Position numbers and translations under genes: made by a program. Source: Piromyces finnis finn (lineage: Eukaryota; Fungi; Neocallimastigomycota). From it: a stretch of DNA of 64,000 bases. Positions 1-53,191 of this stretch are shown piece by piece. Below the pieces are notes generated by a model, which saw only the letters and a program-made list of their open reading frames with translations, did not search any database and was not told where the DNA came from. The stretch is from NCBI GenBank assembly GCA_002104945.1, contig MCFH01000100.1:9091-73090 (forward strand). Reading direction: 5' to 3'. How positions within the stretch are numbered: position 1 is the first letter of the stretch; each line of letters opens with the position of its first letter.

Positions 1-2480
1 AATAACTAATGATTTAAAATACATCTTTTTCTTTTATTTAATTATAATAATTAGTAATCTTATTAAATAATTAAATTTTAAGAAAAGATACATTATCATA
101 TGGTTTTTATTAATTAAAACATAAACAATGTTTATTCATCATTACAATAATAATAAAATATCTTTATAATAATTATTATTTTTGTAATAGGAATGTAAAA
201 TAGTCACATTTATATTTTTAAAATTGTTGTAAAGTTTAAATACTATCAAATATTTTATAAGAATTACAAAATTATTCCGTTTTTTAATTCTAATACATTA
301 TAGTTTTATGCCCATATAAAATTTATCTTCTCCTGTTTTAATTCATTTTTAATACACACTTTTTGAATATTCGTTTAATCTAATTAATTATTAAATTTTA
401 AAAAAAAGGAAAATAAGAATTAAATATTAATATTTTTTTTAATAATTATAAAATATTAATTAATAAATAAACAAATATTAAAGCAAATTAAAATTATATT
501 ATCAACTTCACTATATACGTTCTTTTCAGATTAAAAAAGTACTTTTAATAATACGTTTTAACTCCTATCTTTGAAATTTAATAGCATTTATTGTTGTTAA
601 TAATTAAGAATAATAACTTTAATAAAATGTAATTTTATATAGGATAGCAATTGTAATAATGGTTTATAAAAGTATATATAAGAAGCATTTGTTTTCTTGA
701 TTCTTTTATTATTTTAAAATTGAATTTTATTATTTAAATCTTTTCTCAATTTAATAATCGAAAATCCAAAAATCAAAATTTAATAATACTTAAAAAAGAT
801 ATTTCTATAAAATATTTAAATATAAATTATTTAAATATATATTGTTTAAATTTAAAGTATTTAAAAGAGTAATAAATTTCATCTATATTCCACGAATACT
901 AATCAAATCAAAAATAAAATGCCAAGTTCAAATTCAAATTCCGTTTTATTAAAAGCTACTGGTGCTAAAGTTGTTGCAAATTCTATAAAATCAAAAAATG
1001 GTATAACTAAAAATAAAATTAAAAGTAACATTAATCCATATGTTACTTGTAGCTGTGTCGTTCAATGAACAACGAATCAAACTAATAAAAAAATAATATA
1101 AAGACTTATTTATAATTTTAATTTTACAAATGAATAAATAAATAAAACATTTTTTTTTACTTTTTATCAATTACTATAATTTCATAATTTTAAATATATT
1201 TTAAAATACTCTCACATGTATATATAAATCCTTTTATATAATAAATTTAAATAGTAATAAAAATTATATTTTAATAATAAAATAAAATTAAAAAGTTTTA
1301 TTCAATAATTAAAATGGATTTTTTGTTTTTCTTATTATTAATGTATAAATATTTCATTTTACTTATTTATAAAATTATTTATTAGATAAAATATTTAAAA
1401 AACATTTTTTTTTTACAGTATAAATTTAATTAAGTATAATCAATGAAATGTTAAATTAGGATTATAAAATTACCAGTAACAATAATTGTAATTATTTTTT
1501 AAATTTTATTTATATTATATAAATGTATACATTAATTATATCAAAACAAACTTAAACTTTATTACAATAAATGTTTTTTTTTATAATAAAAAGTTAAAAA
1601 TAATAATTATTAAAAATAATTAATTTAACTAATAAAGAACATTTAAAAATAAATAAAATAAGTTTTTATTTTCTCAAAATATAAAATATAAATATATTAT
1701 TTTATCTTTTCTTCTCTTTAGCAACTTTTTTCTTTTTCGTATCTTCTACTTTTCCCACTAATTAATTTTAAATTTTAATATAAAATGTGGATTATTTTTA
1801 TTTTATTTTTTTTTATATTTATTAAACTTTTTAAAAAATAACAAAGAAAACTTTTTAATTAAAAAATTGACCAATAAACATTCAAAATCAATAATTAAAA
1901 GATCTTTAAAAAAAGTTTTAACTTTTACTAAAGCACTTCTAAATGAATTGATGAATTGTTATCTTTTAATTATATAATGTTATTATTATTAATTCTTTAT
2001 AATATTTTAATATTGATAAATTGTATTTTTATAAGAATATTTAATATATTTTATTAACTAATTAATTATATTAATTAATACTTAAAGTATTAGTATTACC
2101 TAAAGTTTTCTTATTTTAATTAAGCTTTGAGTGTTTTTAATATACCATATATATAAAAATAATATATAATTATTATATATTATTATCAATATTTTAATAT
2201 CTTATTATTTATTATATATTGAATATCAATATTAAGGCATATTAAAACATTTTATAAATAGTATTAAGATTAAAAAAATAAAACATTATTTATGAAAATT
2301 GGTTTAATCATAATAATGCATTGTCACAACTATTTAATCATATTATTCATTATTTTAAGAAGAATAACTTATAATTTGAAAATGCACCCTTTTATTTAAT
2401 TATAATATAACTTGTAACCTTATTTAATAATTTAATTTTTATAAAGATACATTATTACATGTATTTTATTAACTAAAAAT
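1..2480 (+). repeat. Segmental repeat around peptide copy 1 (end of block A, block B with peptide gene, then block A again)
   Basis: 1-130 matches 33880-33990. About 130-1600 matches 33990-35500 and 18400-19680. About 1640-2480 matches 17540-18380 and 33170-33990. Confidence 0.8.
919..1068 (+). CDS. Short CaaX-terminated peptide, copy 1 (49 aa; putative lipopeptide pheromone precursor)
   Basis: ATG 919 to TGA 1068 reads MPSSNSNSVLLKATGAKVVANSIKSKNGITKNKIKSNINPYVTCSCVVQ*. It ends in CVVQ (CaaX). The frame and last 15 aa are conserved in two other copies. It is below the ORF-track length cutoff. Confidence 0.8.
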   Translation: MPSSNSNSVLLKATGAKVVANSIKSKNGITKNKIKSNINPYVTCSCVVQ

Positions 2481-9662: not shown

Positions 9663-10580
<918 letters not shown>

Positions 10581-12299: not shown

Positions 12300-13097
<798 letters not shown>

Positions 13098-16722: not shown

Positions 16723-17539
16723 TTTGATGTAATTTTATTTAAATATAGAAATAGAATATTAAAGATAATAGTTAGTATTATTATTCATTATTATATTATT
16801 ATTAAATTTTTTAATTACTTATTTATATATATTAGAACATTAACCTCTATCCTTAAAAAATTAAATAATAAACAATAAAATAGTAAAAATAATAAATATT
16901 TATATATATATATATTCTTTACAATGTAATTTTAATCAAAAATAAATATTATATAATAAAGTTATTATAGTTTACAAAATAATTATAAATACTTTTGCTA
17001 TTCATATTTGAGTGTCTTGTTTCTAATTCATTTATTTATTTATTCTTTCAATTTACAACGACTTTAAATTATTAATTTTAAAATTATTTCTAATTAAAAA
17101 ATAAAAATAATAATTTTATAATTATAAAATTTGTGGTTTTGTAATATTGAAAAAATATTAATATATATTTTTTAGTGTATTTTATACTACAGTAGGGTTA
17201 TTATATATATTATATATATCAATTATCCATTTAATATTATAGGAACATTATAATGAAAACGAAAAAAATAATAAAAATAATAAATTACATTATTAATATT
17301 TATAATGAATTATATATATAATACATATATTACTATAATAAATGTATTTTGTTAAACACATTAATTTTATATTGAAAAGAATTTATTTTCAAATAAATAA
17401 ATAAAATTAAATATATATAAAAAATAACAATAAGTAGAAATATATTGTAAATAATATCAATTTTATTTTATTAATATGAAAAATTATAAAAACTTTTATT
17501 ATTATTATTTATATAAATATTGCAAAATTAACTAGCTAT

Positions 17540-19678
17540 AAATTTATAAAGAACATTTAAAAATAAATAAATAGGTTTCTATTTTCTCGAAATACAAAAT
17601 ATAAATATATTTTTTTATCTTTCCTTCTTATACTTTTCCTTCTAATTAATTTTAAATTTTAATTTAAAATGTGGATTATTTTTATTTTATTTTTATTTTT
17701 ATATTTATTAAACTTTTTAAAAAATAACAAAGAAAACTTTTTAATTAAAAAATTGACCAATAAACATTCAAAATCAATAATTAAAAGATCTTTAAAAAAA
17801 GTTTACTTTTTACTAAAGCACTACTAAATGAATTGTTATCTTTTAATTATATAATGTTATTATTATTAAAGCTTTATAATATTTTAATATTGATAAATTG
17901 TATTTCTCTATGAATATTTAATATATTTTATTAACTAATTAATTAAATTAACTAATACGAATACTTTTAATATTACTATTAATATATTAATATATTATAT
18001 TGCTATTAAAAGTTTACTTTAAACTTAAAAGAAATGTTGAGTATTTTTATTATGCCATTTAAATAAAAATAAGATAGGATTATTAAATATTTTATAGGAT
18101 ATACCACCAATACCATTTAAATTATAATATCTTAACTATATTAAATATTAATGTCAGAGTATATTAAAATAATATATAAATACTAATAAGATTTTTTAAA
18201 ATAAAAAATAATATATGAAATCTGGTTTAACTATAATAATACATTGTTTCAATTATTAAATCATGTTATTCATAGTTTAAATATTTATATGATTTGAAAT
18301 ACATCCTTTTCTTTTATTTAATTATAATAATAATTAGTAACCTTAATAAATAATTTAACTTTTAAAAGATAACACTATCTTATGATTTTTAATTTTTATA
18401 CCCATATAAAATTTATCTTCTCCTGTCTTAATTCATTTTTAAAACACACTTTTTGAATATTCGTTTAATCTAATTAATTATTAAATTTTAAAAAAAGGAA
18501 AATAAGAATTAAATATTAATATTTTTAATAATTATAAAATATTAATAAAAATAAATAAAAGTAAATTAAAGTTATATTATTAGTTCTATTATATACATAT
18601 TCTTTTTAAATTAAATAGGAACTTTTAATAATATGTTTTAACTCCTTTCTTTTAAGATTTAATAACAATTATTGTTGTTAATAATTAAGAATAATAACTT
18701 TAATAAAATATAATTTTATATAGGATAGCAATTATAATAATGGTTTATAAAAGTATATATAAGAAGCATTTGTTTTCTTGATTAATCATTATTTTAAAAT
18801 TGAATTTCATTATTCAATCTTTATCTCAATATAGCAATCAAGGATTCAAAAAGTAGAGTTTAATAACATTTGTTAAAATATTAATAAAAATATTTCTGTA
18901 ATATATTTAAAAATAAATTATTTAAAAAAAAAGAAATATAATTTTTCTGTCTACATTTTTCGAATCAAAATGCCAAGCTCAATGTTAAATTCAGCTTTAT
19001 TAAAATCTACTGGTGCTGGTTCTGGAGCTATTACATATTCAAAACCAAGAAATAATATAACTAAAAATAAAGTTAAAAGTAACATTAATCCATATGTTAC
19101 TTGTAGCTGTGTTGTTCAATAATGAACAAAAAATCTAATTATTAAGAAAATAATTCTACCACTTATTCATAATTTTAATTTTACAAATATATAAACAAAT
19201 AAATAAAACATTTTTTCACATTTTATTAATTACTATAATTTCATAATTTTAAATATATTTTGAAATACTCTCACATGTATATAAATTCTTTTTTTATAAA
19301 TTTAAATAGTAATAAAAATTATATTTTAATAATAAAAATTTCATTTTAATAATAAAATAAAATTAAAAAGTTTTATTCAATAATTATAATAAATTTTGTG
19401 TTTTTCTTATTATAAACGTATAAATATTTAAATTCTACTTATTAAAAAGTTATCTATTAGACAAACAAGCAAAATATTTAAAAGTATTTCTATTTCTTTT
19501 TATGTGTAAAGTTTAATAAAATTATTGAATTATTAAATGATAAAAAGTAAAGTTTGGCTTACAAAATTTTTTTAAACTTTATTTATTTAATGTAAATGTA
19601 TACATTAATTGTATCAAAATGTATTGTAATAAATATATTAAAAGATAATAAAGTAGAAAAGAAATCTATAAAATATTA
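17540..19678 (+). repeat. Segmental repeat (blocks A+B) carrying peptide copy 2
   Basis: Near-identical to 33170-35507 (with an internal deletion near 18390) and more diverged from 1-2480. Confidence 0.85.
18970..19122 (+). CDS. Short CaaX-terminated peptide, copy 2 (50 aa; putative pheromone precursor)
   Basis: MPSSMLNSALLKSTGAGSGAITYSKPRNNITKNKVKSNINPYVTCSCVVQ* (ATG 18970, TAA 19122). Confidence 0.8.
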   Translation: MPSSMLNSALLKSTGAGSGAITYSKPRNNITKNKVKSNINPYVTCSCVVQ

Positions 19679-19807
19679 TTATACAAACACTATATAAAAA
19701 ATCAATTTTTAACTTTTTTTTATTCATTTTTATAATCTTAAATCCAATATTATATAATTTTAAATTTAATTATAATTTAAAATTATAAATTTGATAATAT
19801 TGAATGC

Positions 19808-21003
19808 TTAGATTTTTTTCTTTAAAAAATTAAGCATTTCGATAATTTCATCTCGATGTTTTATTCTATCTTCAGGTTTAATCATTTTTAAATATTTAAG
19901 GCATTTCTTCATTTTATTTTCTTTTATCATCTTTTTCACCTTACTTATAATGAATCTATAATCATGCTTATTTTTGCCTTTGGTTTGAATAAACTTGTAA
20001 CCTTTATATCTGTTAAGTTATATTGATACCATTAAAATATTAAAAATATATTAGAATAAATATTATTAATTTAATAATTTTAATTTTATTAATAATCATA
20101 TTTAATTAATTATATTATTATAATTAAATATTAAAATACATAAATACATAATTGTATAAATATATGCATACACATAATGATGAATTATTATATGAATGTT
20201 CTGACGGTGAATAAAAGCGTTCTTTACCTCATCATTTTGACATTTCCATAATTCTCCAAAATATCCATTTAAAATTTTATAATTATAATGAATTGCATTG
20301 TTTTGTTTAAAATAGTAGGTCAAGTATTTTTTAAAAATCATAAAACAATTTAATGGACGAGGTATTTTATTACCATATTTTCTTTTTTCATTGAAAATAA
20401 ATGATGTGTAAATGGTTGATATTTTTTGTAAAATATCTTTATCTTTCAATAAAAACTCAACATCACAATCATTCAATTCTTCCATAAAATACAAAAGATA
20501 TTCTTGATCCATTGCTTTTGCTAATCTTAATATTTCAATTCTATTTGAAGCTTGTTGAATTAATTTTCTTACTTCATTTGAAAAGTCATCATTTTCATTA
20601 GATGGAATATAATAATAATTATAATAATCAATTTTATTATTAAAAGCGTTTTTATAAACATCAATACTGATATTATTGATATTATTATTGATATTATTAT
20701 TGATATTATTGTTGATATTATTATTGATATTATTGTTGATATTAATAATATTATTAACATTTTGATCATAATTCATAAAATCATTATTGATTACTTGATA
20801 ATTAATATTTTGATTATAATTCAATTGATCGCAATTGACTAGATTGCTGATTTGGCCATTATTAATTTGACTAATATAGATTTGATTGCTATTAATATTA
20901 TTTTTCTGATTAATAATAGCTAGATAATTATTATAATTATTATAATTATAATTATTATTATTTTTTAATGTAAATTCATTATTGACTAAATTTTCATAAT
21001 CAA

Positions 21004-21048
<45 letters not shown>

Positions 21049-21382
21049 GATTGATATTATTAATATCAATAATAGGAATACAATTCACTTGGTTATTATT
21101 ATTATTTTGATAATTATTCTTGTCATATATTGTTTTCATAGTGTTATTACCAAAATTACCAAAGAGGTAGTTAGTATTAAAAGGAGGAGAGACGATGTTT
21201 AGATGGGAAGTAACCTGAATATTCTTAATACTGTTTTGAGTAAAGTTCGTCAAGGTAGGATCTAACACATCAGAGAAATTACCACTTTGAAGATTTAAAA
21301 TGGAATTATTAGAATTCTTTGCATTTAACATATCAAATTGTTGATAATTAATGTTATTAATATTATTAATATCGTAAAACAT
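19808..21382 (-). CDS. MATA/SOX-type HMG-box transcription factor a (470 aa; exons 21382-20172, 20009-19808)
   Basis: Asn-rich N-terminus, then KIPRPLNCFMIFKK...YFGELWKCQNDEVKNAF...HHY. A phase-2 GTATGC..CAG intron joins V-YKGYKFIQTK..., completing the HMG box, and the frame is open to TAA. Confidence 0.9.
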
Positions 21383-23481
21383 TTTTAATAATTTATAAAA
21401 AAAAAGTAAAAAAAAACTGTTATTTAATTGTTAATTTATTTTCTTTTTTTATTTTAAAAAAAAGTAAAGATAAAATAGAAAAACAAAAACAAAAAAAAAA
21501 AAAAAAAAAAAAACGAATTTTTATACTTTAATTTTTAACTTTTTTTGTGTCATCTATTTCTTTTAGAATAGTCCAATAATACAAAAATAAAGGTATACAA
21601 ATTTCGAAATAAATAAGATTTTAAACTATTTTTAACCTATTTAAACTTTTATTAATCAATTGTAGTTTATTTTGAAAATTAATTAATAGAAAATTTTTAA
21701 GCATTAAACTTTATTTCGGTTTAACTATATTACACAGTCGATTTTAACATTTTTAAAGCATTAGAGTTTAAATTTTAAAAACCTTTCTATTTTCAATTTT
21801 ACAATATTTAATTTTAGTTTTAAAGTAAAAAATCAATCAAATAATTAAAGTCCTTATTATGAGACATAGTATTTAAAATATAAAAAATAAAATTTAATAA
21901 GCTATTTTTATTTTTTTTACTCATGGGATACCTAACTAATTCTTGCATCAAAATATTAAAACATCAATTTAAATATTGAATTGATAAAAAAAATATATAG
22001 ATTTATAAACATTTTTTTATTTTGAATATATACTTTTAAATGGATGTTAATTTTATTCATTACCATTATTATTTTTTATGCATAATGCCTTTCTTATGAT
22101 AAATTACATGCATTATCAATGCATTATTAATACATTATATTAAATACATTTTACCATATAACATTAATAGTCAAAAAATATTTTATAAATTTTTTAAAAT
22201 AAGTTAAAATGTATTATCCTTTAGAATTATGTAGAGTAATAATATAACATTAATAAAAATAAACTTTTAACTATATTTATTGTACAATATACAATACATT
22301 TATTGTATTTAATGTATATTATTAGAAGTTGTTAATTTAGGATTTATAATTATTTCAACCTTTATTAGAGTAATGTATGATAAATAAATACATTCTATTC
22401 TAATCAAACTACATTCATTAATATATTTATATTGTGACTTAAATATATATTCCAATACAATAGGATTCAATACATTTTAATGCATTTTAATAAATATTAT
22501 AATCAATAAGACTATAATTAATATCAAATATTTATAATAATATTTTCATTATGGAAAATAATAGTACAAATTTCAAAATATTTTATATTTTTTGTTAACT
22601 ATAAGAATAAATAAATAAATAACTTCTATAATATAAAATTCCACAACACACTAACATAAGCATTCCTATAAAATATATAAGATATATAAAATTTTAATCC
22701 AATATTATTTTATTTAGTAAAGAGAAATAGTAGTTTTAAAAAAATAAAAGTTTCTATGTTTATTTTGTTTATTTAATAGATTATTAAAACATTTTTAAAA
22801 TTACTTTCCTTTCATTTTTAAAATTAATTCAATTATATATAATGTAAAGTAATTATAGTTAAATGATTCATTTATTCATTTATACATACATTTCATAATA
22901 TATTAAATTTTATATTAAATTTTTTGTTTAAAGGTTGAAAAGCCATTAATTTATTAATTATGAAAAACATCTATTATGAATTTTACTAGAATGTTTTTAT
23001 ACAGTTACCTTTACACCTTTACAATTTATTATGATTACTTTTCATAAATTAAAAGGTTCATTATAGTTATATAATTATTACTTTTATGGTATATTCATTT
23101 TAACCATAAAAATATACCACATTCAAAATAAAGAAATTATTATTATATAGTTATATTTCTTGTAATAACATAAAAATACAAAATAAAAAAAAAATTATTA
23201 TATATAAAAATATATTACTTCTATTAATGACTTAATAATATGAATATATATTTGAAATATTATTTTTTTTAAATTATATTTCAAATATTGTTTAAATAAT
23301 ATTATTTTTTTTAAATAAGAGTTCCTATTATTTATTAATATTTTTTTATTATATTTTTATATTATAGTAATGTTTCAAATTTTATTTTATATTTAAACGT
23401 ATTATTGAAATATTAAATAATAAAAAAATATTAATAAATAATTAATTTTTTTGACATTTTATTATATCACATTAATTAATT

Positions 23482-24627: not shown

Positions 24628-25748
24628 ATGAATTCAAAAAAAAGTCTTTCGAATACCTCGAATAATTTTTTAGAATCACCTAATCCAATTTTTAAAAGAA
24701 ATTCTACATTATCAAATAAACTTCTTAGTGATATTATAACAAATGATAATACCGCTGTATCAAGTTTTCCTTTAAAGCTTCCGGAAATCAGTAAGAGAAA
24801 AAATGACTTAATTCAAAATATAAGCCGAAATTCAAGGCAGAATAATAATTCAGTAAATATTATATTTTTATTTATTGTTTTATTTTTTATTTTATTTATT
24901 TATATAACATATTTTATATTATATTTAATTAAAAAAAGTATTAACATTTTTTAAATTTAATAATTATATATTTATATACTATTATAGTTATTTTCAAATT
25001 TATCTTCACAAGACTCTTTTTCAATTGAAAACACAAGTCCAATATTAAATAATGCATCTTCAATGCCAGTACCAATAATTGACCCCTCTTTTATTAGCTC
25101 ATCATGTTTATCATTTGAATTATTTTCATTTAATGATATTTTTACTTCTTTCTATTATTCCAACTCAATTATAGCCGAGTCTTGTTCTAATTTACCTACA
25201 AATCAAAATCAAAATATAAATCAAAATTTATGTAATTACAAAAGATCAGCTAAAAATACATATTCAAATACAATTTTAAAAGAAAAAAAACAAAAAAATA
25301 AATGTGGGAACTCAAAGAATCGTAAGCGCACTAAGTTTTCCAATAGAGTGACCAATATATTAAAAGAATGGTTCTCAAACCATTCTTTCCCTTATCCCAC
25401 TATTATTGAGAAGAAGCGTCTTTGTGAAGCTACAGGACTTACAATGGTAAGTTATTTATTATTATCAATATTATAATTATTTTATAAAATAAATATATAT
25501 ATTAACAATATTTTCTTTTTATATTTTTTATTCATGCTACATAATACAACCTATAAATGAATTTATATATATATAATTAAATATTAAAAATCTGTTTTAT
25601 CTTTAGGATCAGGTATAAATTTTAAATGATTTTAAATTACAAATTATAATAATGATATTTATTACAATTCTAATTTCTAATTATAAATTTTATTTTAATA
25701 TTATAGCTTAATATCTGGTTTATAAATGCTAGACACCGTTATACATAA
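24628..25748 (+). CDS. TALE-like homeodomain transcription factor b (243 aa; exons 24628-24852, 24988-25446, 25607-25612, 25707-25748)
   Basis: Same exon structure as gene a. Ends RKRTKFSNRVTNILKEWFSNHSFPYPTIIEKKRLCEATGLTM|DQ|LNIWFINARHRYT*. Confidence 0.9.
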
Positions 25749-29063: not shown

Positions 29064-30566
29064 ATGTCTTCTGAAACTCCTAAATCATTTTGTGCTTCAT
29101 CTCCTTTTCCACTATCTTTTTCTGCTGTAAATAATAGAAAATATTTTATGGAAATTAGAAGTCCTCTTCCCTCCCAAAGTAATTCAATTAATCCATTTAT
29201 TACAAAAGAAAGTTTTACCAATCCCTTTGATAATTTTTTAGATTCACCTACTTGTTCTCCAGTCTTTAAAAGAAACTCTATATTATTAAATGAACTTTTT
29301 AGTAATCCCGAAATAAATTATAATAATGAGATATCAAGTAGTCCTATAGTACTTCCCACAACTAGAATTAATGAAAATCTATTTAAGAAAAATGAAGAAA
29401 ATCAGTTTAAATATATATCCCCAAAAATGTTAGAAAATAATAAGAATTTAGAGAAGAAGAAAAATGGGAAATTCAAATCAATGACAGAATTTGATAAGCT
29501 ATCAACTGAGAATAATAAAATAAGTAAACAATTTTTAAATAAAAAAGATAGCTTGGAAGGAAAAAAAAAGAGGAAGAAGAATGATTTAATTCATAATATA
29601 AACCAAAAATCAAAGCAGTGCAATAACTCAGTTAATATTAATAAAATTAAAAAAAATGTAAAAATACATATTTTATTTATTAACATAATATATTTTACAT
29701 TTTAGTTAATTGGAAAAATACTAACATTCTTTAAATTTAATAATCATGCATGTATATACTGTTTTAGTCATTTTCTTTTATACCATCAAAAGACCCTTTT
29801 TTAATAAAAAACTATAGTCCCATATTAAATAATGTACCTTCAACATCAGTACCATTAATTAACACGCCTTTACTTAGCTCACCATATTCATCATGTTCAC
29901 CATTTTTGTTTGATAATGTTTCCTCAAGTTCCGATTCCATTGTCTCAGAGTTTTATTCTAATTTTCCTTTAAATCCAAATCCAAATCCAAATTCATATCC
30001 AAATCTAAATTCAAATTCAAGTTCAAATTCAAATTCAAATTCAAATAGTTGTGAAAAATCAATCATTAGTGTAGATTCATTGTGTTCAAATTCTGTCTCA
30101 AACGTAGATAAACATAAAAGAAAATGTGGGAACTCAAAGGGTCGTAAGCGCCCAAATTATTCTCACAAAGTTACTAAAATATTGAAAGAATGGCTCTCAA
30201 ATCATTCTTTCCCTTATCCTACCATTACTGAAAAGAATCGTCTTTGTGAAGCTACTGGTTTAACATTAGTAAGTTATTAATTAATATCAATATTAATTAT
30301 TTTCATAAAATATATTTATATTAACAATATTTCTTTTTATTATTTTTCACACTACACGTCTACACAATATAAATTATAAATGAATATATAAATATAATTA
30401 AATATTAAAAATACTTTTTTTCAGATTCAGGTATATTTTAAATAATTTTAAATTATAAATTATAATAATAATACTTATTACACATTACTAATATTTTATT
30501 ATAAATCCTAATTTCATATTATAGCTCAATAACTGGTTCGTAAATGCCAGACGCCGTTATTCATAA
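29064..30566 (+). CDS. TALE-like homeodomain transcription factor c (371 aa; exons 29064-29630, 29768-30268, 30425-30430, 30525-30566)
   Basis: Same four-exon plan with a longer exon 1. Ends RKRPNYSHKVTKILKEWLSNHSFPYPTITEKNRLCEATGLTL|IQ|LNNWFVNARRRYS*. Confidence 0.9.
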
Positions 30567-31476: not shown

Positions 31477-33049
31477 CTTGAATCTTAAATTCATTTGATG
31501 TATTTTCATTTTCAGCCATTATTATATTTTGGAAAAACTAATAATAATAAAAACTAAAGTATTCGAAAGAAAGAATGAACCTATAATTACTATTTTTGTT
31601 ATTTTATTAATAATAACAAAATAGATAGATTAATTAATATATAAGCAATTATTTTAATTATTATTATTTATTAAAAAACTATTTATAAATATTATCTAAA
31701 TATTATAACTTAATTATAAGTTGTATTTACTGAAAACTATTAGTATAATAACATAACTTATTCCTTTTACTCTAACACAAGAAATTTCAGTATTAGCCCA
31801 ACTATCTGATGTAAATAATTGAACAATTAATAATATAGAATTAAATATATTGTCGAAATTTTCATCAGGAATTTTATTTTCAAAATTCATCTTACCAGAA
31901 AATAATTGAAATCCAAATGTGGCAAATATTATAACAAAAATAATCCAAATAATAAATAAACATAATTGTTTCAGAAAAGAATCCTTAATAACAATAAATA
32001 AAAATTGAGATTGTTTTGAGTATCTACTAATTCGTAAAACTCTCAAAGATCTTAAAATTCTAAAAACAAATAAACCATTATTAGATGTTATGATAAATTG
32101 AATAATTATTGATAGAATGGTATTCAATTCAGTGATGAAAACCCTACCAGAATTGCTATTGCTAGTAATAGAGTTACTCCTGATTGCCCTTGTGTCTGTC
32201 CATGTTGCCGATAGGATGAACAATCTTTTTATCATTGGATTTTAGAATAACCTGCATTCTCTGAATACAGAACTTCTTCACTCAGCTTTCTTGACGATCT
32301 TTTTACCCTTTTTCACAATAAATACAATAATCAATTCATCACTTACTTACTCTCTGAAATGGAAGTAAGAAAAATAATTTATAATTCTATTTTTACGTTT
32401 CTTCTTGGTGGAACTTTAGCTTATGACTATAAATCGATAAGGCGGAACAAAGACATTTGAATGAACAGCTTTACAGTTCATTGGGGTCTCATATTCCATA
32501 GGTAGTGGGTCTCTCGGCTTTTCTTACTAAAAAAAAAACCCTATCATTAGTTCATTAGTAGCTCAATGAAACTACTTTTTGATAGGTTTAGTAAGACGTC
32601 TAACGTCATCAAGAGTGCCGACGTCGTGGAACCGAATTGCAGAGTTCATTGAACATTTATGCAATTTTAATAATTATTTTATTTTATTTTATATTTATAT
32701 ATATATATATTATTATTTTTATTTATTATTTATTATATCAATATGTATTATCACCTAATATAATGTAATATCACAAATTAAATAAATACAAGAAGTGTAT
32801 TTCTTTCCAAGTCTAAAAAAAAAAAACCTGATAGAATGGTAAATATACAATCAACAATGTTGTATCCATATTGCTTTACATTACCAATGGGATTTAACAT
32901 GTTTAATTTACATATCATTTCCACTATAAATATTACAACAAATACTTTTGATAAATTGTCAATAATTTTTTTATCCTTTTCTGTACTATCTTTATTAATA
33001 CAACTGACACTAATAGTATCAACCATTATAACTATCATCATAAATGTAA
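31477..33049 (-). pseudogene. Four-domain voltage-gated cation channel pseudogene (domain II fragment only), LINE-interrupted
   Basis: Paralogous to 56245-57105 (TFMMIVIMVDTIS...FRILRSLRVLRIS...QLFTSDSW). It is truncated at both ends, frameshifted in the S6 exon, and split by the 32123-32828 insertion. Confidence 0.85.
32123..32828 (+). mobile_element. 5'-truncated LINE insertion with 13-bp target-site duplication
   Basis: TGATAGAATGGTA at both 32110-32122 and 32829-32841 (single copy in the intact channel gene); A12 at 32815-32826; encodes CPCCR*DEQSFYHWILE*...FLLGG (LINE ORF2 C-terminus-like). Confidence 0.85.
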
Positions 33050-33169
33050 TTTGAATAGAATGTAACAATAGTAGTTCTTTATCATAAATTATATTAATAA
33101 AAGTTGACATAATTATAAAATCTAAATTAACAACTCTTAAAAAGAATCTTAGAAGTGGAATCAAAATAT

Positions 33170-35507
33170 AAAATATAAATATATATTTTTCTTCTTTTTA
33201 GCAACTTTTTTCTTTTTCGTATCTTTTTTCTTTTCCACTAATTAATTTTAAAATTTAATTTAAAATGTGGATTATTTATATTTTTTTTTTTTATATTTAT
33301 TAAACTTTTTAAAAAATAACAAAGAAAACTTTTTAAATTAAAAAATTGACCAATTAATATTCAAAATCAATAATTAAAAGATCTTTAAAAAAAGTTTACT
33401 TTTTACTAAAGCACTACTAAATAAATTGATGAATTGTTATCTTTTAATTATATAATGTTATTATTATTAAATCTTTATAATATTTTAATATTGGTAAATT
33501 GTATTTTTATAAGAATATTTAATATATTTTATTAACTAATTAATTAAATTAACTAATACTTTAAATATTACTATTAATATATTATATTGCTATTAAAAGT
33601 TTACTTTAAACTTAAAAGAAATGTTGAGTATTTTTAATATGCCATTTAAATAAAAACAAGATAGGATTATTAAATATTTTATAGAAAATACCACCAATAC
33701 CATTTAAATTATAATATCTTAATTATATTAAATATTAATATTAAAGCATATTAAAATAATATATAAATACTAATAAGATTTTTTAAAATAAAAAATAATA
33801 TATATGAAATCTGGTTTAATTGTAATAATACATTGTTTCAATTATTAAGTCATGCTATTCATAATTTAAATATTAATATATGATTTGAAATACATCCTTT
33901 TCTTTTATTTAATTATAATAATAATTAGAAAACTTAATAAATAATTTAACTTTTAAAAGATAACACTATCGTATGGTTTTTAATAAATAAAAATTAAAAT
34001 ATTTACAATATTAACATATCAATACAATAATAATAAAATATCTTTATAATAATTATTATTTTTGTAATAGGGATGTAAAATAGTCACATTTATATTTTTA
34101 AAATTGATAAAAAGTTAAATACTATTAAATATTTTATTAAAATTACAAAAATTATAATTATTCCGTTTTTAAATTCTAATACATTATAGTTTTATGCCCA
34201 TATAAAATTTATCTTCTCCTGTTTTAATTCATTTTTAATACACGCTTTTTGAATATTCGTTTAATCTAATTAATTATTAAATTTTAAAAAAAAGGAAAAT
34301 AAGAATTAAATATTAGTATTTTTTTAATAATTATAAAGTATTAATAAAAATAAATAAAAGTAAATTAAAGTTATATTATTAGTTCTATTATATGTATATT
34401 CTTTTTAGATTAAATAGGAACTTTTAATAATATGTTTTAACTCCTTTCTTTTAAGATTTAATAACAATTATTGTTGTTAATAATTAATAATAATAACTTT
34501 AATAAAATGTAATTTTATGTAGGATAGCAATTGTAATAATGGTTTATAAAAGTATATATAAGAAGCATTTGTTTTCTTGATTATTTATTATTTTAAAATT
34601 GAATTTCATTATTCAATTCCTATTTCAATATAGCAATCAAGGATTCAAAAAGTAGAGTTTAATAACATTTATTAAAATAGTAATAAAAATATTTCTGTAA
34701 TATATTTAAAAATAAATTATTTAAAAAAAGAAATATAATTTTTCTGTCTACATTTTACGAATCAAAATGCCAAGCTCAATGTTAAATTCAGCTTTATTAA
34801 AATCTACTGGTGCTGGTTCTAGAGCTATTACATATTCAAAACCAAGAAATAATATAACTAAAAATAAAGTTAAAAGTAACATTAATCCATATGTTACTTG
34901 TAGCTGTGTTGTTCAATAATGAACAAAAAATCTAATTATTAAGAAAATAATACTACCACTTATTCATAATTTTAATTTTACAAATATATAAATAAATAAA
35001 TAAAACATTTTTTCACATTTTATTAATTACTATAATTTCATAATTTTAAATATATTTTGAAATACTCTCACATGTATATAAATTCTTTTTTTATAAATTT
35101 AAATAATAATAAAAATTATATTTTAATAATAAAAATTTCATTTTAATAATAAAATAAAATTAAAAAGTTTTATTCAATAATTATAATAAATTTTGTGTTT
35201 TTCTTATTATAAACGTATAAATATTTAAATTTTACTTATTAAAAAGTTATCTATTAGACAAACAAGCAAAATATTTAAAAGTATTTCTATTTCTTTCTAT
35301 GTGTAAAAATTTAATATTGAATTATTAAATGATAAAAAGTAAAGTTAGGCTTACAAAATTATTTGTTAAACTAAAAAATTTTAAGTTATTTAAAACTATT
35401 TATTCTTTATTTATTTAATGTAAATGTATACATTAATTGTATCAAAATGTATTGTAATAAATATATTAAAAGATAATAAAGTAGAAAAGAAATCTATAAA
35501 ATATTAA
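33170..35507 (+). repeat. Segmental repeat (blocks A+B) carrying peptide copy 3
   Basis: Near-identical to 17540-19678. A degenerate part of block A recurs at about 51500-51830. Confidence 0.85.
34767..34919 (+). CDS. Short CaaX-terminated peptide, copy 3 (50 aa; putative pheromone precursor)
   Basis: MPSSMLNSALLKSTGAGSRAITYSKPRNNITKNKVKSNINPYVTCSCVVQ*; one substitution (G19R) versus copy 2. Confidence 0.8.
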   Translation: MPSSMLNSALLKSTGAGSRAITYSKPRNNITKNKVKSNINPYVTCSCVVQ

Positions 35508-36580: not shown

Positions 36581-39136
36581 TTAATTCTTTTTAGTGGCCT
36601 TTTTAGTGACAACCTTGACAGTAGTCTTTTTAGCAGCGGCTTTTGTTGTAGTGGTTTTTTTAGTAGTGGCTTTAGTTGTGATTTTTTTGTTGGTAGTTTT
36701 AATAGTAGTTTTTATAGTAGTCTTTTTAGCGGCAACTTTAGTAGTAGTAGTAGTAGTCTTCTTAACTGGAGTAGTAGTAGCCTTCTTAACTGGAGTAGTA
36801 GTAGTAGCCTTCTTAACTGGAGTAGTAGTAGTAGCCTTCTTTACTGGTGTAGTAGTAGTCTTCTTTATAGTTGTTTTGGCGGCAGTGGTGGTCTTTTTAA
36901 CAGCTGCCTTTGTAGTGGTCTTAACGACAGGGATGGTAGTAGTGGTAGTAGTGGTAGTAGTAGTGGTGGTGGTGGTGGTGGTGGTGGTAGTAGTAGTAGT
37001 AATCTTTATAGCAGCTTTGGAAGTAGTGTTGACGACAGGAGTGGTTGTGTTATTTTCAGTAGTTTCAGGCATTTCCCAATCAATAGGATTCTTTAATTTA
37101 ATAATTTTAGCTTGACCCTTTTGTAATGGAACCCAAACAGTAATTGGATCATTACCAACATGTTCAATGGTAGCACCAGAAGGAATAGCAGAAACCTTAC
37201 CTGGAACTGTTACTGGAATAGTACAATCACCCTTACTAGCAGAGACATAAATACTAACAACCTTATTATTTTCAATAACTAATTTACTCTTAGCACCACA
37301 AGTTTCTAACTTGGCACGTTCGGTGTAAATTTCTGCTTGCTTATCAAGTTTAATAGAAATTAATGGCCAATCTACATATTTAGTGTAAAGGTTAACGACA
37401 CTTCTAGTCCAATCTTCAAGAAGAGATTCACCTAAACCATTTCCCTTTTGGAAATAACGAAGGTTAGCTTGATGGAATTGATGAGCTTCATGACGTAATT
37501 GAGTCATTAAAAGAAGAGTACGTTCACTTTCCTTTTTTAAGAATTCATTGTAATTTAATTTTCTACCATAATAACTTTCATATTGGTCATTATACATCCA
37601 AAGATTTTCTTCTCTAGTAGAACAAAAGTAATAAATTTCAGTTGGAGTACGTGGAATAATTGGGAAACCTGCTAAATGACTACTTTCATTTGTAGTATAG
37701 AATGGAAGATATGGATTATTAGTGTTAGTAATAGCCTTACGAGAAAGATCACCAGTTGCAGATTGGATACCATATTTTCTAAAGATTTCAAGAGCATCCT
37801 TGTTGTGAAGACCAGAAATTTGTGGAGTAATAATGGAAGCACCAGACCAATATTCAGTATCAACAATACCCATTCTTTTACCGATATCAATATTTAAACG
37901 AATTTCATTATCTACATCAGTTGCATGAATTTGATCTAAATTTTCGTGAGTAAATGTGTGAGAACTCCAGAAGAATTCCTTTTGAGCAGTAACATTATGA
38001 CTGAAATAGTTGAAAATTGGATCATTTTTAAATGCATTAATTTGAGCATTACTAAATTGATAATTAATTTTTGGCCAACGTTGATCACCAGTTCCTGGTT
38101 CCTTTACCCATTCTTCATCATGATAACGATTACAATCAATTTGAATAGATTGGGTGTAGTCACCACTAATCAAAATACCATTACCATTGTAGGCTAATTC
38201 AGCACGGTAAAAGGAACCCTTTGGCATAATATTTAATACATTTTTTTGGAATTCAGCAATTTTTTGGAAATCATATGGAGAAGTACGGAAAGTTTCACCA
38301 CCAGTGGTTGTTTCTGTTTCAGGATTAACTAATTCAGTACCTAAAAAGACATCATCAATATGAGGGGTGAAATAAACACGACGGAAACCATTAAATAAAG
38401 CACGAGTACCCCAAGTTAACCATAAATGATTAATAATTGAACTACTTTGACTCCAAGAACCGAGACCAAAGAAGAATCTCATGACTTCACGACCATCATC
38501 ATAAGTAGAAATGGTAGCAGCAACTTCCCCTTTTTTACCATTTTTACTGTAATATAAAAATGGACGAGTAGTCTTAGTATTAGTAATTTTAACACGGGAG
38601 AAATAAATATCATTTACGTCTAATGGAGCAGTCATCTTCACTCTAGCTTGATTAAATATAGTTTTAACTTCATCTGATTGTTCAACAATCAAGGATTGAT
38701 TACTTGAAGTTTCACCCCATTTATCGGTTGCTAGAGCAACGTCAACCTTATTACTAATATCATCTGAAATGACAACTCTACGAATACTATTTTGAGCTTC
38801 GTATTTTTCCAAGAAAGACCATTGTTCAGGAGTTAAAGCACTTACCCAACTACCATTAAGTTCATAAGTAAGTTCACTACCATTAACAACAACGAGATTA
38901 TATTTTGGTTCGTTACTTTTATTATATAAATCTAAATTACCAGTAAATGGACTAGCAGAAGAAAATTCAATAACTTCGTATGGGATACCATAAGAATTAA
39001 AATTATTTTTAATAGAAGTAATTTCAGTACCTTTTGTAGTTAAAACTAAAGCTTTCATAGTAATTTTACTACATGAAGAAACGGTAACTGCAATAGCAAT
39101 ACCGACTACTTTAAAAATTTTTGAAAAGATAACCAT
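36581..39136 (-). CDS. agd3: Secreted Agd3-like (CE18-type) polysaccharide deacetylase with Thr/Lys-rich tail (851 aa, intronless)
   Basis: Long clean ORF with an N-terminal hydrophobic signal-like segment and HIDDVFL and SHTFTHEN metal-site motifs as in Aspergillus Agd3-type deacetylases. The C-terminus has poly-Thr and PVKKATTT repeats. Family assignment is by motif recall, not a search. Confidence 0.7.
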   Translation of the reverse strand: MVIFSKIFKVVGIAIAVTVSSCSKITMKALVLTTKGTEITSIKNNFNSYGIPYEVIEFSSASPFTGNLDLYNKSNEPKYNLVVVNGSELTYELNGSWVSALTPEQWSFLEKYEAQNSIRRVVISDDISNKVDVALATDKWGETSSNQSLIVEQSDEVKTIFNQARVKMTAPLDVNDIYFSRVKITNTKTTRPFLYYSKNGKKGEVAATISTYDDGREVMRFFFGLGSWSQSSSIINHLWLTWGTRALFNGFRRVYFTPHIDDVFLGTELVNPETETTTGGETFRTSPYDFQKIAEFQKNVLNIMPKGSFYRAELAYNGNGILISGDYTQSIQIDCNRYHDEEWVKEPGTGDQRWPKINYQFSNAQINAFKNDPIFNYFSHNVTAQKEFFWSSHTFTHENLDQIHATDVDNEIRLNIDIGKRMGIVDTEYWSGASIITPQISGLHNKDALEIFRKYGIQSATGDLSRKAITNTNNPYLPFYTTNESSHLAGFPIIPRTPTEIYYFCSTREENLWMYNDQYESYYGRKLNYNEFLKKESERTLLLMTQLRHEAHQFHQANLRYFQKGNGLGESLLEDWTRSVVNLYTKYVDWPLISIKLDKQAEIYTERAKLETCGAKSKLVIENNKVVSIYVSASKGDCTIPVTVPGKVSAIPSGATIEHVGNDPITVWVPLQKGQAKIIKLKNPIDWEMPETTENNTTTPVVNTTSKAAIKITTTTTTTTTTTTTTTTTTTTTTIPVVKTTTKAAVKKTTTAAKTTIKKTTTTPVKKATTTTPVKKATTTTPVKKATTTPVKKTTTTTTKVAAKKTTIKTTIKTTNKKITTKATTKKTTTTKAAAKKTTVKVVTKKATKKN

Positions 39137-41766: not shown

Positions 41767-42091
41767 ATGTTTTACGATATTAATAATATTAATAATATTC
41801 ATTATCAACAATTTGATATGTTAAATTCAAAGAATTCTAATAATTCCATTTTAAATCTTCAAAGTGGTAATTTCTCTGATGTGTTAGATCCTACCTTGAC
41901 GAACTTTACTCAAAACAATATTAAGAATATTCAGGTTACTTCCCAGCCAAATATTGTCTCTCCTCCTTTTAATACTAACTACCTCTTTGGTAATAATACT
42001 ATGAAAACAGCATATAGCAAGAATAATTATCAAAATAATAATAATAATCAAGTGAATTACATTCCAGTTATTGATGCTAATAATATCAATC

Positions 42092-42131
<40 letters not shown>

Positions 42132-43293
42132 TATTGATTATGAAAATTTAGTCAATAATGAATTTACATTCAAAAATAACAATAATTATAATTATAGTAA
42201 TTATAATGATTATTTAACTATTGTTAATGAGAATAATAATATTAATAACAATCAAATCTATATTAATCAAATTAATAATGGCCAAATCAACAATCTAGTC
42301 AATTGCGATCAATTGAATTATAATCAAATTGTTAATTATCAAGTAATCAATAATAGTTTTATAAATTATGATCAAAATATTAATAATATTATTAATATCA
42401 ACAATAATATCAATAATAATAGCAATAATAATATCAGTATTGATGTTTATAAAAACGCTTTTAATAATAAAATTGATTATTATAATTATTATTATATACC
42501 ATCTAATGAAAATGATGACTTTTCAAATGAAGTAAGAAAATTAATTCAACAAGCTTCAAATAGAATTGAAATATTAAGATTAGCAAAAGCAATGGATCAA
42601 GAATATCTTTTGTATTTTATGGAAGAATTGAATGAATTTGATGTTGAATTTTTAATGAAAGATAAAGATATTTTAAAAAAAATATCAACTGTTTACACAT
42701 CATTTATTTTCAATAGAAAAAGAAAATACGGTAATAAAATACCTCGTCCATTAAATTGTTTTATGATTTTTAAAAAATACTTGACCTACTATTTTAAACA
42801 AAACAATGCAATTCATTATAATTATAAAATTTTAAATGGATATTTTGGAGAATTATGGAAATGTCAAAATGATGAGGTAAAGAACGCTTTTATTCACCGT
42901 CAGAACATTCATAAAATAATTCATCATTATGTGTATGTATATATTTATACAATTATGTATTTATGTATTTTAATATTTTAATATTTAATAATAATATAAT
43001 TAATTAAATATGATTATTAATAAAATTAAAATTATTAAATTAATAATATTTATTCTAATATATTTTTAATGGTATCAAAATAACTCAACAGATATAAAGG
43101 TTACAAGTTTATTCAAACCAAAGGCAAAAATAAGCATGATTATAAGTTCATCATAAGTAAGGTGAAAAAGATGGTTAAAGAAAATAAAATGAAGAAATGC
43201 CTTAAATATTTAGAAATGATAAAACCTGAAGATAGAATAAAACATCGAGATGAAATTATCGAAATACTTAATTTTTTAAAGAAAAAAATCTAA
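41767..43293 (+). CDS. MATA/SOX-type HMG-box transcription factor b (455 aa; exons 41767-42932, 43092-43293)
   Basis: Inverted duplicate of the 19808-21382 gene (about 19698-22050 vs 41090-43403). Same intron (GTATGT..CAG), open frame, near-identical HMG box. Confidence 0.9.
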
Positions 43294-50496: not shown

Positions 50497-53191
50497 ATTA
50501 AAACAATAATATAATGAAATAAAATAGGAATTATAAGTTTTTTATCAAATTATTAAACATTAATTATTTTAAAATAAATATTCTTAACTTGTATTTATAA
50601 TAATATTAATAAGAAGTAAACTTTATTTATTAAAATTTTAACAATTAATTTAATTGTAAATTTTCTTTCTTTTTTTTTTATTTTCTAAAGTCATAAATCA
50701 AAAAATGATAATTTATATAATTTTTTTTTACTAATAATTATTTTTTTTTTGTAATCTTTTATTATATTTAAAAAGAAGATTAAAAATATAATATAAAGAC
50801 CATTAAAACTATTAATAATATAATAGTAATTATTCTTTATTTATAAAAATAAAAATTATAATTATAAATACTAATATTTTTTCTTATTAATTTAATTATT
50901 TATTATATAGGTAAAAAAATTAAAATTAAAATATATTTGAAACGTCAAGAGAAAATTACAATAATTAAATAAAAATATTGGATAACAAAATACATTTTAT
51001 ATTATTAATTATACCTTAAATTATGAATAACATGACTAAGTAATTGTAACAATGTATTATTATAGTTAAACCAGCTTTCATATATAATATTTTATTTTTT
51101 GTTATTATTACTTATTTTTAATATAGAGTAAAAATATTAGAATTGATAAAAGATATTAATATAATTTATATTTAATAATGATACTAATTCATTTTATTTG
51201 GCATATTAAAAACACTCATCGTTCATTTAAAATCAAAAATAAACCTTATTATTAAAAATCATAATATTTTAATAATAATAATTAGATTAGTAATAATAAT
51301 GATTTAACTTTTTAGTTAATATATTAATAAAATAACATAATGAAAAAATTATAATTATTATTTAAAAATATTACAATGTAAAGTAAAAAGTTGTAAATTT
51401 AATAAGCAAATAAAAAAATGAATATAAAATTATAATTAACATAATTCGTAATTAATTCAATTTATAAATTACATTAAAAAATAAATAAAATAGTTTTTTG
51501 TTTTCTCATAGTATAAAATATATTTTTTTCTTCTTTTTAGCAGCTTTTTTCTTTTTCGTATCTTTTAAATATTTTTTTAATTTGATAGTGCTCCGATTAT
51601 TTTTTTTTTTTTATATTTAAAAAACCTTTTTAAAAATAACAAAGAAAACTTTTTAATTAAAAAATAATTAAATGATTTTTAAAAAAAGTTGACTTTTTTA
51701 TTTATTATACTAAAATATTTTTAAATGAATTCTTATCTTTTAATTATGTAATATTCTTACTAATCTCTATAATATTTCAATATTGATAAATTGTAATTTT
51801 TAAGAATATTTAATATATTTAGTTTTATAATTAAATATATTTTAAAAAATATACATGTATAATAATAATAATATATCTCAATAAAAAAATATAAAAAAAA
51901 AAGGTTCTCTCTATCTTTTTAAAATTCATGTGTATAACTATTCAAATTTATATAATAAAAATTTGGAATATTTATGAAAACTTAGTATTAAGTAAAAGTT
52001 CATTTTAATATGTTATATTTTTTTTATTCATTATTAAAATCCACTTTTTGTTTTACGAAAATATATATATATATAAATTCAACCAATTTTCAAATGTTTT
52101 TGTTATAAAACACTTTTAAAATATATAATATAATTATATAAATGTTGTTATGGACCTAATTTATATATATGAAAGGTTTTCATATTTTTTTAATGATAAA
52201 ATATTAATGAATATTTTATTGGTTATTATTTAATTGTAAACATGATATTTAGGTTGTTAACAGGCACAAAAGGTTTGGTTACATTAAAAGATGGTTTTAC
52301 TTCTCCAAAATTTTTCATTTGGATTTGATGTCATTTTTGTGAATAAATAATAAAAATTGGAGATTCAAACAAAAATTATCAAAAGGGTTAGATATTAAAA
52401 ATTAATTAAGGTGTATCTTTTCTTATTTACTACTACTACAAAAACATAAATAAAAATAGAATATATATTTTATGTATTAAATATTTAATAATTGATGCAA
52501 AATATGAAATTATTTTTTAACCTCATCTACAAACTCCTACTTTATTTTAATATTTAATATAAAAAAAGAATTATAATAAACTTTATTTAAAAACTTTAAA
52601 TCAAAATTAATATAAATATTAAAATATCTATTATTTAAGTATTTTCCATCATCTTTATAAATAGCACAGTCTTTTCGTATCATAGACATAAATATATTAT
52701 ATACAATAAAATATTTAAAAATACTTTTTCTTTTTAATAATAAATATTCTTTAATTTATTTAAACTAGTGAAATTTTCTCATTGATTTTTTAACTTAATT
52801 ATAATACTAAGGTTTTATGTTTCAAACATTTTAATTTCTAAATATTACAAATTAATAATATTATATTCATATATAATATAATTTATATTATAGGAATGAT
52901 TTAAGAGAAAATTACTTTGTTAATATAAATTTAAAAAATTAGCAAAATTATTTATAAATAATTTTTACTTTTATTTCTTATTAGAAAAGATGCTTTATTA
53001 TTAAAATTTAAATTGCATATAAAATTTTATATTATTTTTGGAATGATTAAATGCATCATAATTATTATTATTTTTAATTTATAAAAAATAAGCAAAATGA
53101 AAATTGACATATATATATAATTAAATTTTATACAAAAATATTTAAATTCCATTATTAATTTTTGTTAAAATAATGTATTTTTCTAATATAT

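Follow-up and report, generated by a model that had tools for sequence, protein, structure and literature searches.

The a-factor types of Ascomycota (S. cerevisiae MFA1/2, S. pombe M-factor, N. crassa mfa-1 and S. macrospora ppg2) are encoded as short precursors that end in a CaaX box, the processing of which consists of farnesylation of the cysteine, trimming of the last three residues and methylation of the new cysteine end. The pheromone/receptor (P/R) loci of basidiomycetes (Ustilago mfa, Coprinopsis/Schizophyllum phb, Cryptococcus MFa/MFalpha) likewise hold multiple CaaX genes of 35-60 amino acids (aa) among transcription factors of mating-type style. For the anaerobic gut fungi, as far as we are aware, neither a sexual cycle nor a mating-type locus nor a peptide pheromone is known. 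In a stretch of 64,000 nucleotides (nt) from the anaerobic gut fungus Piromyces finnis finn (GenBank assembly GCA_002104945.1, contig MCFH01000100.1, positions 9,091 to 73,090, forward strand), referred to below as the window, we found three copies of a 49-50 aa open reading frame (ORF) ending in a CaaX box, to which a different scaffold of this assembly adds a fourth. We conclude tentatively that these ORFs are a family of real, unannotated small genes with at least four genomic copies in P. finnis, and the single most likely reading of their product, although we hold it with less than even confidence, is an a-factor-type lipopeptide signal precursor.

Lipopeptide pheromones and their Ste3 receptors have been treated as an invention of the Dikarya (PMC3251606), and in a survey of the anaerobic fungal genomes peptide mating factors had no homologues (Wilken et al., 2019; PMC6883316). 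The P. finnis peptides nevertheless have much of the design of a-factor precursors, with which they share a Ser/Thr-rich diverging head, a fixed tail, the occurrence of several near-identical copies and a frequent lack of annotation. Working criteria for genes of the a-factor type specify a product of fewer than 100 aa with a Ser/Thr-rich divergent N-terminus, a conserved C-terminus and a CaaX box, the gene being usually unannotated (PMC10569646). At 49-50 aa the P. finnis products are short precursors in this sense, with a canonical CaaX/CPaX ending (CVVQ) in all four copies, and they combine a divergent Ser/Thr-rich head with a conserved tail, as judged on two lineages. An earlier note on this DNA had recognised the pattern of a pheromone precursor here; the layout does fit these loose criteria, but the invariance of the C-terminus is no stronger than that of non-coding blocks in the vicinity. 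In size the peptides are like the putative a-factor of Leotiomycetes (45-64 aa), an aromatic residue stands near the CaaX box as in the a-factor criteria (PMC10569646), and their MPS start resembles that of Sordariomycete precursors beginning MPSTTTQ... or MSPSTKN... (PMC3068285). They differ from a-factors in having no detectable sequence homology to them, in an X residue that is Gln rather than Met or Ala, in a second Cys two residues before the one predicted to be prenylated, and in the absence of a GY motif directly before the CaaX box; moreover, they come from a phylum with no reported Ste3 receptor or known sexual cycle, and the peptide is known from sequence. The four copies are as follows.

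919-1068, + strand: CaaX peptide ORF copy 1, 49 aa, ATG start, stop TGA; the diverged lineage
18970-19122, + strand: CaaX peptide ORF copy 2, 50 aa, stop TAA followed by TGA; an HMG-box gene is convergent with it, 980 nt away
34767-34919, + strand: CaaX peptide ORF copy 3, 50 aa; identical with L011:3001-3153, without a called gene
Scaffold MCFH01000056.1, L012:12261-12413, minus strand: CaaX peptide ORF copy 4, with three further N-terminal replacements and the same tail

The three + strand ORFs of the window have the positions and lengths that the earlier note had given, and its description of them as unannotated holds, as the public NCBI annotation has no gene at any of the four places. A tblastn search found no further peptide copy in the window, where only two other ORFs end in C-x-x-x, neither of them canonical. 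Copies 1-3 have an MPSS start and a KSNINPYVTCSCVVQ end in common, all four ORFs close with C-V-V-Q and then a stop, and the tail, ...KNKVKSNINPYVTCSCVVQ, leads from basic residues through a second Cys to the CaaX box. The ORFs of copies 2, 3 and 4 are 97-99% identical to one another, with a single Gly/Arg difference between the peptides of copies 2 and 3. Copies 1 and 2 are separated by 19 substitutions, which change 13 codons non-synonymously and 3 synonymously, and by three indels (6, 3 and 3 nt). The first 29 codons hold about 13 non-synonymous against 2 synonymous changes and two of the indels, and the last 21 codons hold one I/V change. The C-terminal identity that had been claimed for 15 aa in fact spans the last 21 residues of copies 1-3, apart from that one position, and the other differences claimed in the same place are all seen on the alignment: the frame-preserving codon difference, the synonymous change in the Val48 codon (GTC in copy 1, GTT in copies 2 and 3), and the TGA and TAA stops, which arise from a 3-nt indel (CAA TGA in copy 1, CAA TAA TGA in copies 2 and 3). 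Because the 13 non-synonymous and 3 synonymous codons fall nearly all within the first 29, the head appears to change fast while the tail is fixed; judged from these alignments, the head would be either free of constraint or under diversifying selection.

Several independent properties of the ORF resemble those of a coding sequence. In all four copies the sense frame is free of internal stops, and each of the other frames has at least one across the GC-rich island in which the ORF lies; GC content is 26-28% in the ORF against 10-15% in the 400-nt flanks, and 10% at third codon positions of the ORF. In all six pairs of copies the identity of the ORF is above that of the flanks. Indels in the ORF are divisible by three in three of three cases (6, 3 and 3 nt), as against 4 of 19 in the flanks (p ~0.02). 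In a simulation of 19 random substitutions, the ORF, its stop and a Cys at position -4 were retained together in about 7% of trials (0.07-0.14). Codon usage was scored as a log-likelihood trained on the large genes of the window, with 89 ATG-initiated ORFs of 35-80 aa as the null. On this scale the peptide ORFs reach 0.48-0.52 bits per codon and rank second, fourth and fifth among the 89 small ORFs, compared with -0.03 +/- 0.30 for the null and 0.19-0.87 for the real genes of the window. Constraint begins 4 bases 5' of the ATG, directly after indels of 17 nt and 23-24 nt, and ends at the stop codon; the edges of the ORF are thus the edges of the constraint, since conservation ceases at the stop and the sequence before the ATG is broken by out-of-frame indels. 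The ATG itself stands in an AAAATG context, directly after non-homologous sequence and without an acceptor site. Together with RNA-labelled contigs described below, these coding signals suggest that the peptide ORF is a real small gene.

Transcription of the peptide gene is likely. In three RNA-labelled P. finnis runs, from three studies, 18-20% of sampled words of the region 18900-19300 were present; one DNA run of P. finnis likewise has words of the region. A contig of 235 nt from an RNA run fits positions 18930-19164 from end to end, covering the whole ORF and about 40 nt on each side. It has seven differences from copy 2, among them the Gly-to-Arg change of copy 3, and since it is identical to none of copies 2-4 its source is another copy or another strain. 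The contigs of two other RNA runs begin to fit at 18904 and carry sequence unlike that of the window upstream of this point. When RNA contigs were placed on 17300-23200, the intergenic bins 18285-18678 and 21437-21830 were near zero; 94-98% of the contigs placed there fit only partly, and their depth, which is inflated by short low-complexity matches, was not used as a measure of expression.

The earlier identification of CVVQ as a CaaX prenylation box agrees with published cases: human INPP5A ends in CVVQ, which is described as the site of its farnesylation and directly follows a Cys that may be palmitoylated (PMC12450637), and RAP2C, with the same ending, is listed with a 20-carbon (geranylgeranyl) group (PMC7674641). 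By established CaaX biology, the translated P. finnis product should be prenylated, trimmed of VVQ and methylated on the Cys, and farnesyl is the most likely lipid because the X residue is Gln. As an a-factor-type precursor, it would lose its Ser/Gly/Lys-rich, fast-changing N-terminal half as a pro-region, and the active lipopeptide would be the invariant tail, some 10-20 residues that close with ...NPYVTCSC(farnesyl)-OMe. This molecule might be exported by a Ste6-type ABC pump and might be sensed by a receptor of a so far unnamed kind. We infer the mature product, its secretion and its pheromone activity conjecturally, from the layout of the precursor. Homologues of Ste6, Ste20 and Gpa1 have been reported from these fungi (PMC6883316).

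The genes around the peptide ORFs bear on the role of the product. The regulators concerned, all in the window, are listed here.

20102-21382, - strand: HMG-box gene, exon 1 (HMG_box, E 5e-4), interrupted by an intron; oriented convergently to peptide copy 2
41767-42981, + strand: inverted duplicate of the HMG-box gene, annotated as BCR36DRAFT_416957, P0001
15433-16710, + strand: TALE homeobox gene 1, in exons, with the WFINARRR exon at 16690
24628-25740, + strand: TALE homeobox gene 2 (Homeobox_KN, E 3e-5)
29064-30560, + strand: TALE homeobox gene 3 (Homeobox_KN, E 1e-5)

Scaffold 56 repeats the arrangement, with a peptide gene converging on an HMG-box gene and a homeobox gene nearby, and the unit of peptide, HMG-box and homeobox genes thus occurs at least three times in one assembly (two units in the window, one on scaffold 56). 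A role in cell identity or of a mating-like kind is supported by this setting, because the peptide genes converge on HMG-box genes and have TALE homeobox genes around them, and because the association recurs on scaffold 56. In Cryptococcus, homeodomain and pheromone genes are found in one large locus with several identical pheromone copies (PMC2873909 for the type of locus). Unlike the basidiomycete loci, however, the P. finnis peptides have no Ste3 gene beside them, their partners are HMG-box and TALE homeobox genes without an obvious divergent HD1/HD2 pair, and the cassette is repeated within a single haploid assembly, with no known allelic variants.

The three TALE (KN-type) homeobox genes are tandem paralogues, in each of which an intron splits the homeobox before WFxNARR. 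The PYP motif was not found in TALE homeobox gene 1, which may be degenerate. The HMG-box gene occurs a second time in inverted orientation, together with 1.8 kb of surrounding sequence (19696-21500 versus 43404-41648, 91.6% identity); its long ORF overruns a probable splice donor, and from ...IHHYVY onwards the annotated proteins have another C-terminus. This HMG-box ORF (20102-21382) matches two P. finnis proteins at 91-95% identity and one metagenomic homologue at 55% identity. One of the two P. finnis proteins is encoded on MCFH01000100.1 (73,090 bp), where the gene order Agd3, HMG, ankyrin, Ion_trans agrees with that of the window. The metagenomic homologue is carried by ten gut metagenome contigs (L001-L010; ENA ERZ2724xxxx / JGI 33000xxxxx) from an anaerobic-fungus-like organism, each of which breaks off at one and the same AAT microsatellite, some 980 nt downstream of the HMG-box gene. 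No CaaX ORF was found on these contigs, which end just short of the expected place, and their 865-aa neighbouring gene differs from the Agd3-type gene of the window and gives no usable synteny.

The window has a GC content of 14-29% throughout, and its larger ORFs comprise an Agd3-type deacetylase, three pieces of Ion_trans channels and an ankyrin protein. The deacetylase gene, at 36581-39136 on the - strand, lies between peptide copy 3 and the second HMG-box gene and is complete for a galactosaminogalactan deacetylase of this type (CBM87, CE and C-terminal domains), with a long Thr/Lys-rich tail. Ion_trans gene pieces are duplicated in inverted orientation at 54923-57498 (-) and 61072-63448 (+), and further Ion_trans fragments at 31714-33164 (-) adjoin peptide copy 3. 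Another inverted pair of ORFs, at 10195-10491 (+) and 12387-12623 (-), is nearly all poly-Tyr from a TAT microsatellite, and its members have identical heads and tails.

The peptide ORFs are embedded in a dispersed repeat of 1.3-2.4 kb, within which several non-coding blocks are conserved between the copies.

9-1546, + strand: repeat block A with copy 1; counterparts at 18394-19678 (copy 2) and 33880-35506 (copy 3)
311-430, + strand: nearly invariant non-coding block, the farther upstream of two; counterparts at about 18400-18520 and at 34197-34316
580-702, + strand: nearly invariant non-coding block, about 220-340 nt 5' of the ATG, which holds the TATAAAAGTATATATAAG stretch; a putative promoter or 5' leader
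About 18661-18783 and 34460-34582: counterparts of the 580-702 block
1112-1311 (1112-1131, 1169-1224 and 1268-1311), + strand: conserved blocks 3' of the stop with AATAAA-type strings; a putative 3' untranslated region (UTR) and poly(A) region

Over block A, copy 1 is 79-81% identical to copies 2 and 3, which are 94% identical to each other, and the flanks of copy 1 differ by 20-27% from those of the other copies. The blocks at 311-430 and 580-702 are 96-100% identical between copies, the remaining flanks merely 60-80%. A TATA-like string occurs in one of the conserved upstream blocks, about 220-250 nt 5' of the ATG; an exact HMG-binding core (CWTTGWW) was not seen in the conserved upstream block when it was read by eye. 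These upstream blocks could be regulatory elements or tracts of gene conversion. The longest runs that are invariant in all three copies of the window, of 49, 44 and 41 nt, are non-coding, the first of them lying at 654-702 inside the 580-702 block, and the 40-nt run of the ORF ranks fourth. A second repeat unit, block B, of about 0.85 kb and without a conserved ORF, occurs at 1632-2488, 17546-18391 and 33161-34002, with a partial inverted pair at 50955-51376 and 51426-51876. For copies 2 and 3 it is placed 5' of the peptide block and for copy 1 on either side of it, with partial copies elsewhere, and it may be a mobile element or the edge of a duplicated cassette.

Database searches gave little help with the nature of the peptide. 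An exact look-up of the four peptides found none on record among public gene calls, the PDB held no sequence match, and the best score in the ESM Atlas was 0.74, below any useful level. Pfam-A, searched at E up to 10, returned two sub-threshold chance matches (Ribos_L4_asso_C and CUB_M02D8) and no pheromone family, a negative that says little because pheromone families are tiny and lineage-bound. No Rfam RNA family was detected in the window, and an AlphaFold2 model of the peptide showed no secondary structure, with a predicted local distance difference test (pLDDT) score of 54. We found no published description of a CaaX peptide gene in Neocallimastigomycota.

A number of observations weigh against a lipopeptide signal precursor, or against parts of the case for it. 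The earlier note had taken the invariant C-terminus as its principal argument, which carries little weight by itself: the invariance of the C-terminus alone is no proof of coding constraint, because invariant runs as long as its own also occur in non-coding parts of the repeat (49, 44 and 41 nt, against 40 nt in the ORF), and gene conversion, or constraint on regulatory sequence, could explain part of the conservation pattern. Over the three codon positions the substitutions that separate the two lineages are distributed 8:7:4, without an excess at the third. The high identity of copies 2-4 leaves a single deep comparison, that of copy 1 with the rest. The RNA evidence consists of strandless assembled contigs, with a depth of 3.9 for the one that fits fully, and DNA carry-over is possible. 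A word-indexed search of 5.8 billion proteins found no relative of the peptide, and a hidden Markov model (HMM) search with the three-copy profile in 1.84 billion representatives gave zero matches at E up to 0.001. In JGI metagenome contigs, searched with the peptide profile and the HMG alignment, and in IMG/VR viral contigs, patterns were matched and no relative was confirmed. Ste2/Ste3 receptors are reported to be lacking in chytrid-grade fungi, and Ste3-type receptors outside the Dikarya (PMC3251606; 10.1101/2024.11.25.625238), and neither STE3 nor any other seven-transmembrane receptor was found among the larger ORFs of the window, the membrane proteins of which are Ion_trans channels. The multiple occurrence of the cassette in one genome is unusual and argues against a simple mating-type (MAT) locus. 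All copies would yield the same mature peptide, unlike the allelic pheromones at a mating-type locus. Finally, the Lys-rich stretch and the second Cys two residues before the CaaX Cys fit an intracellular membrane anchor equally well.

This last point leads to a serious rival account, though one that we consider less likely than not, in which the gene is real and its product is an intracellular, membrane-tethered micropeptide, a disordered chain of 45 residues anchored by farnesyl, palmitate and the Lys-rich stretch. The order of basic residues, second Cys and CaaX box is that of the tails of Ras or INPP5A, and in INPP5A the very same CVVQ follows a Cys that is a potential palmitoylation site (PMC12450637). 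The Ras hypervariable region and the INPP5A and RAP2C anchors are in this respect close parallels, the CVVQ of the latter two being identical to that of P. finnis, with a second Cys and basic residues upstream (PMC12450637, PMC7674641). The evidence for coding and transcription applies equally to a tethered micropeptide, and no Ste3-type receptor is known in the lineage (PMC3251606). Those tails, however, end folded enzymes or GTPases, whereas the P. finnis tail is approximately the whole product, with no upstream domain, and the peptide has no predicted structure or domain with which to act at a membrane. The fast change of its 29 N-terminal residues would be odd in what should then be the sole functional part, and is expected of a pro-region that is discarded; the linkage to HMG-box and homeobox genes would also be left unexplained. 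The resemblance to a GTPase tail, and that of the NP-aromatic residues a few positions before the CaaX box to the end of the likewise small G-protein gamma subunits (PF00631), raise the idea of a G-gamma protein, or of the last exon of a small GTPase with missed upstream exons, to which we give next to no credence. The earlier note had itself disfavoured a G-gamma subunit, and comparison with PF00631 bears this out, with no Pfam match at E up to 10. There is no PDB match either, no helix is predicted, the DPL motif and helical hairpin of G-gamma are lacking, and 50 residues are too few for such a hairpin. The ORF has its own ATG (AAAATG) following non-homologous sequence, with no acceptor site or nearby upstream exon. 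When the window was scanned for motifs in six frames, P-loop and DxxGQ were absent throughout; there was a single, isolated NKxD-like match at 17467 on the minus strand, and there were four DPL strings, which lie far from the ORFs or on the opposite strand and none inside them. Both proposals were rejected on these grounds: no profile match or helix, no P-loop or DxxGQ, an isolated NKxD and a start codon of the ORF's own.

An explanation of a different kind, an equally serious rival that we also judge less likely than not, is that the ORF is untranslated, a by-product of a young and partly gene-converted repeat that serves as a promoter, UTR-like or non-coding RNA unit, its CaaX ending being coincidental. 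The long invariant runs outside the ORF are what such a unit predicts, and the near-identity of copies 2-4, the mostly non-synonymous substitutions with their 8:7:4 spread over codon positions, the absence of protein relatives from the libraries searched (5.8 billion and 1.84 billion) and the fact that an antisense ORF of 42-44 aa is kept open as well all point in its direction. Set against it are the roughly 7% of simulations that kept ORF, stop and Cys at -4, the in-frame indels (3 of 3, against 4 of 19 in the flanks), the GC island with gene-like codon scores, and the coincidence of the conservation edges with ATG and stop. A canonical Cys-aliphatic-aliphatic-Gln end is moreover expected by chance in about 1 of 10,000 ORFs, as estimated from base composition, and the two other C-x-x-x-ended ORFs of the window are non-canonical. 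The antisense ORF could in turn be the gene itself, which we regard as highly improbable. It encodes 42-44 aa with a hydrophobic N-terminus, at the following positions.

903-1031, minus strand: antisense ORF opposite copy 1
18951-19085, minus strand: antisense ORF opposite copy 2
34748-34882, minus strand: antisense ORF opposite copy 3

It begins with ATG and is open in all four copies, including that on L012, and the RNA contigs, being strandless, would serve it as well. Yet its codon scores are 0.25-0.36 against 0.48-0.52 for the sense ORF, and its amino-acid identity is 62% against 70%; its last codons fall in the non-homologous stretch 5' of the sense ATG, so that its ends differ among copies, and about 34 nt of the invariant block are left outside it. 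Lys/Asn-rich sense codons automatically yield open antisense frames rich in Phe, Ile and Leu, and the antisense ORF is probably a mirror effect of this kind.

If the peptide is an a-factor-type signal precursor, the consequences for the anaerobic gut fungi could be considerable, and the wider proposal that follows is one we put forward as improbable but not negligible. Neocallimastigomycota, a group regarded as asexual and as devoid of peptide mating factors and of Ste2/Ste3 receptors, would signal with a farnesylated peptide whose genes stand next to those of HMG-box and TALE homeobox regulators; such signalling would predate the Dikarya or would have arisen independently, with a different class of receptor, and the repeated cassettes would be the core of a cryptic system of mating or cell identity. 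If the product is instead a membrane-anchored micropeptide, it would still represent an unannotated gene family and an example of the small ORFs that are missed at 15-20% GC. A CaaX peptide encoded between HMG-box and TALE homeobox genes is a concrete candidate molecule that can be synthesised, and it may offer a handle on hidden sexuality, on communication between zoospores or hyphae, or on a new class of receptor. The breeding of these biomass-degrading gut fungi would also have practical value.

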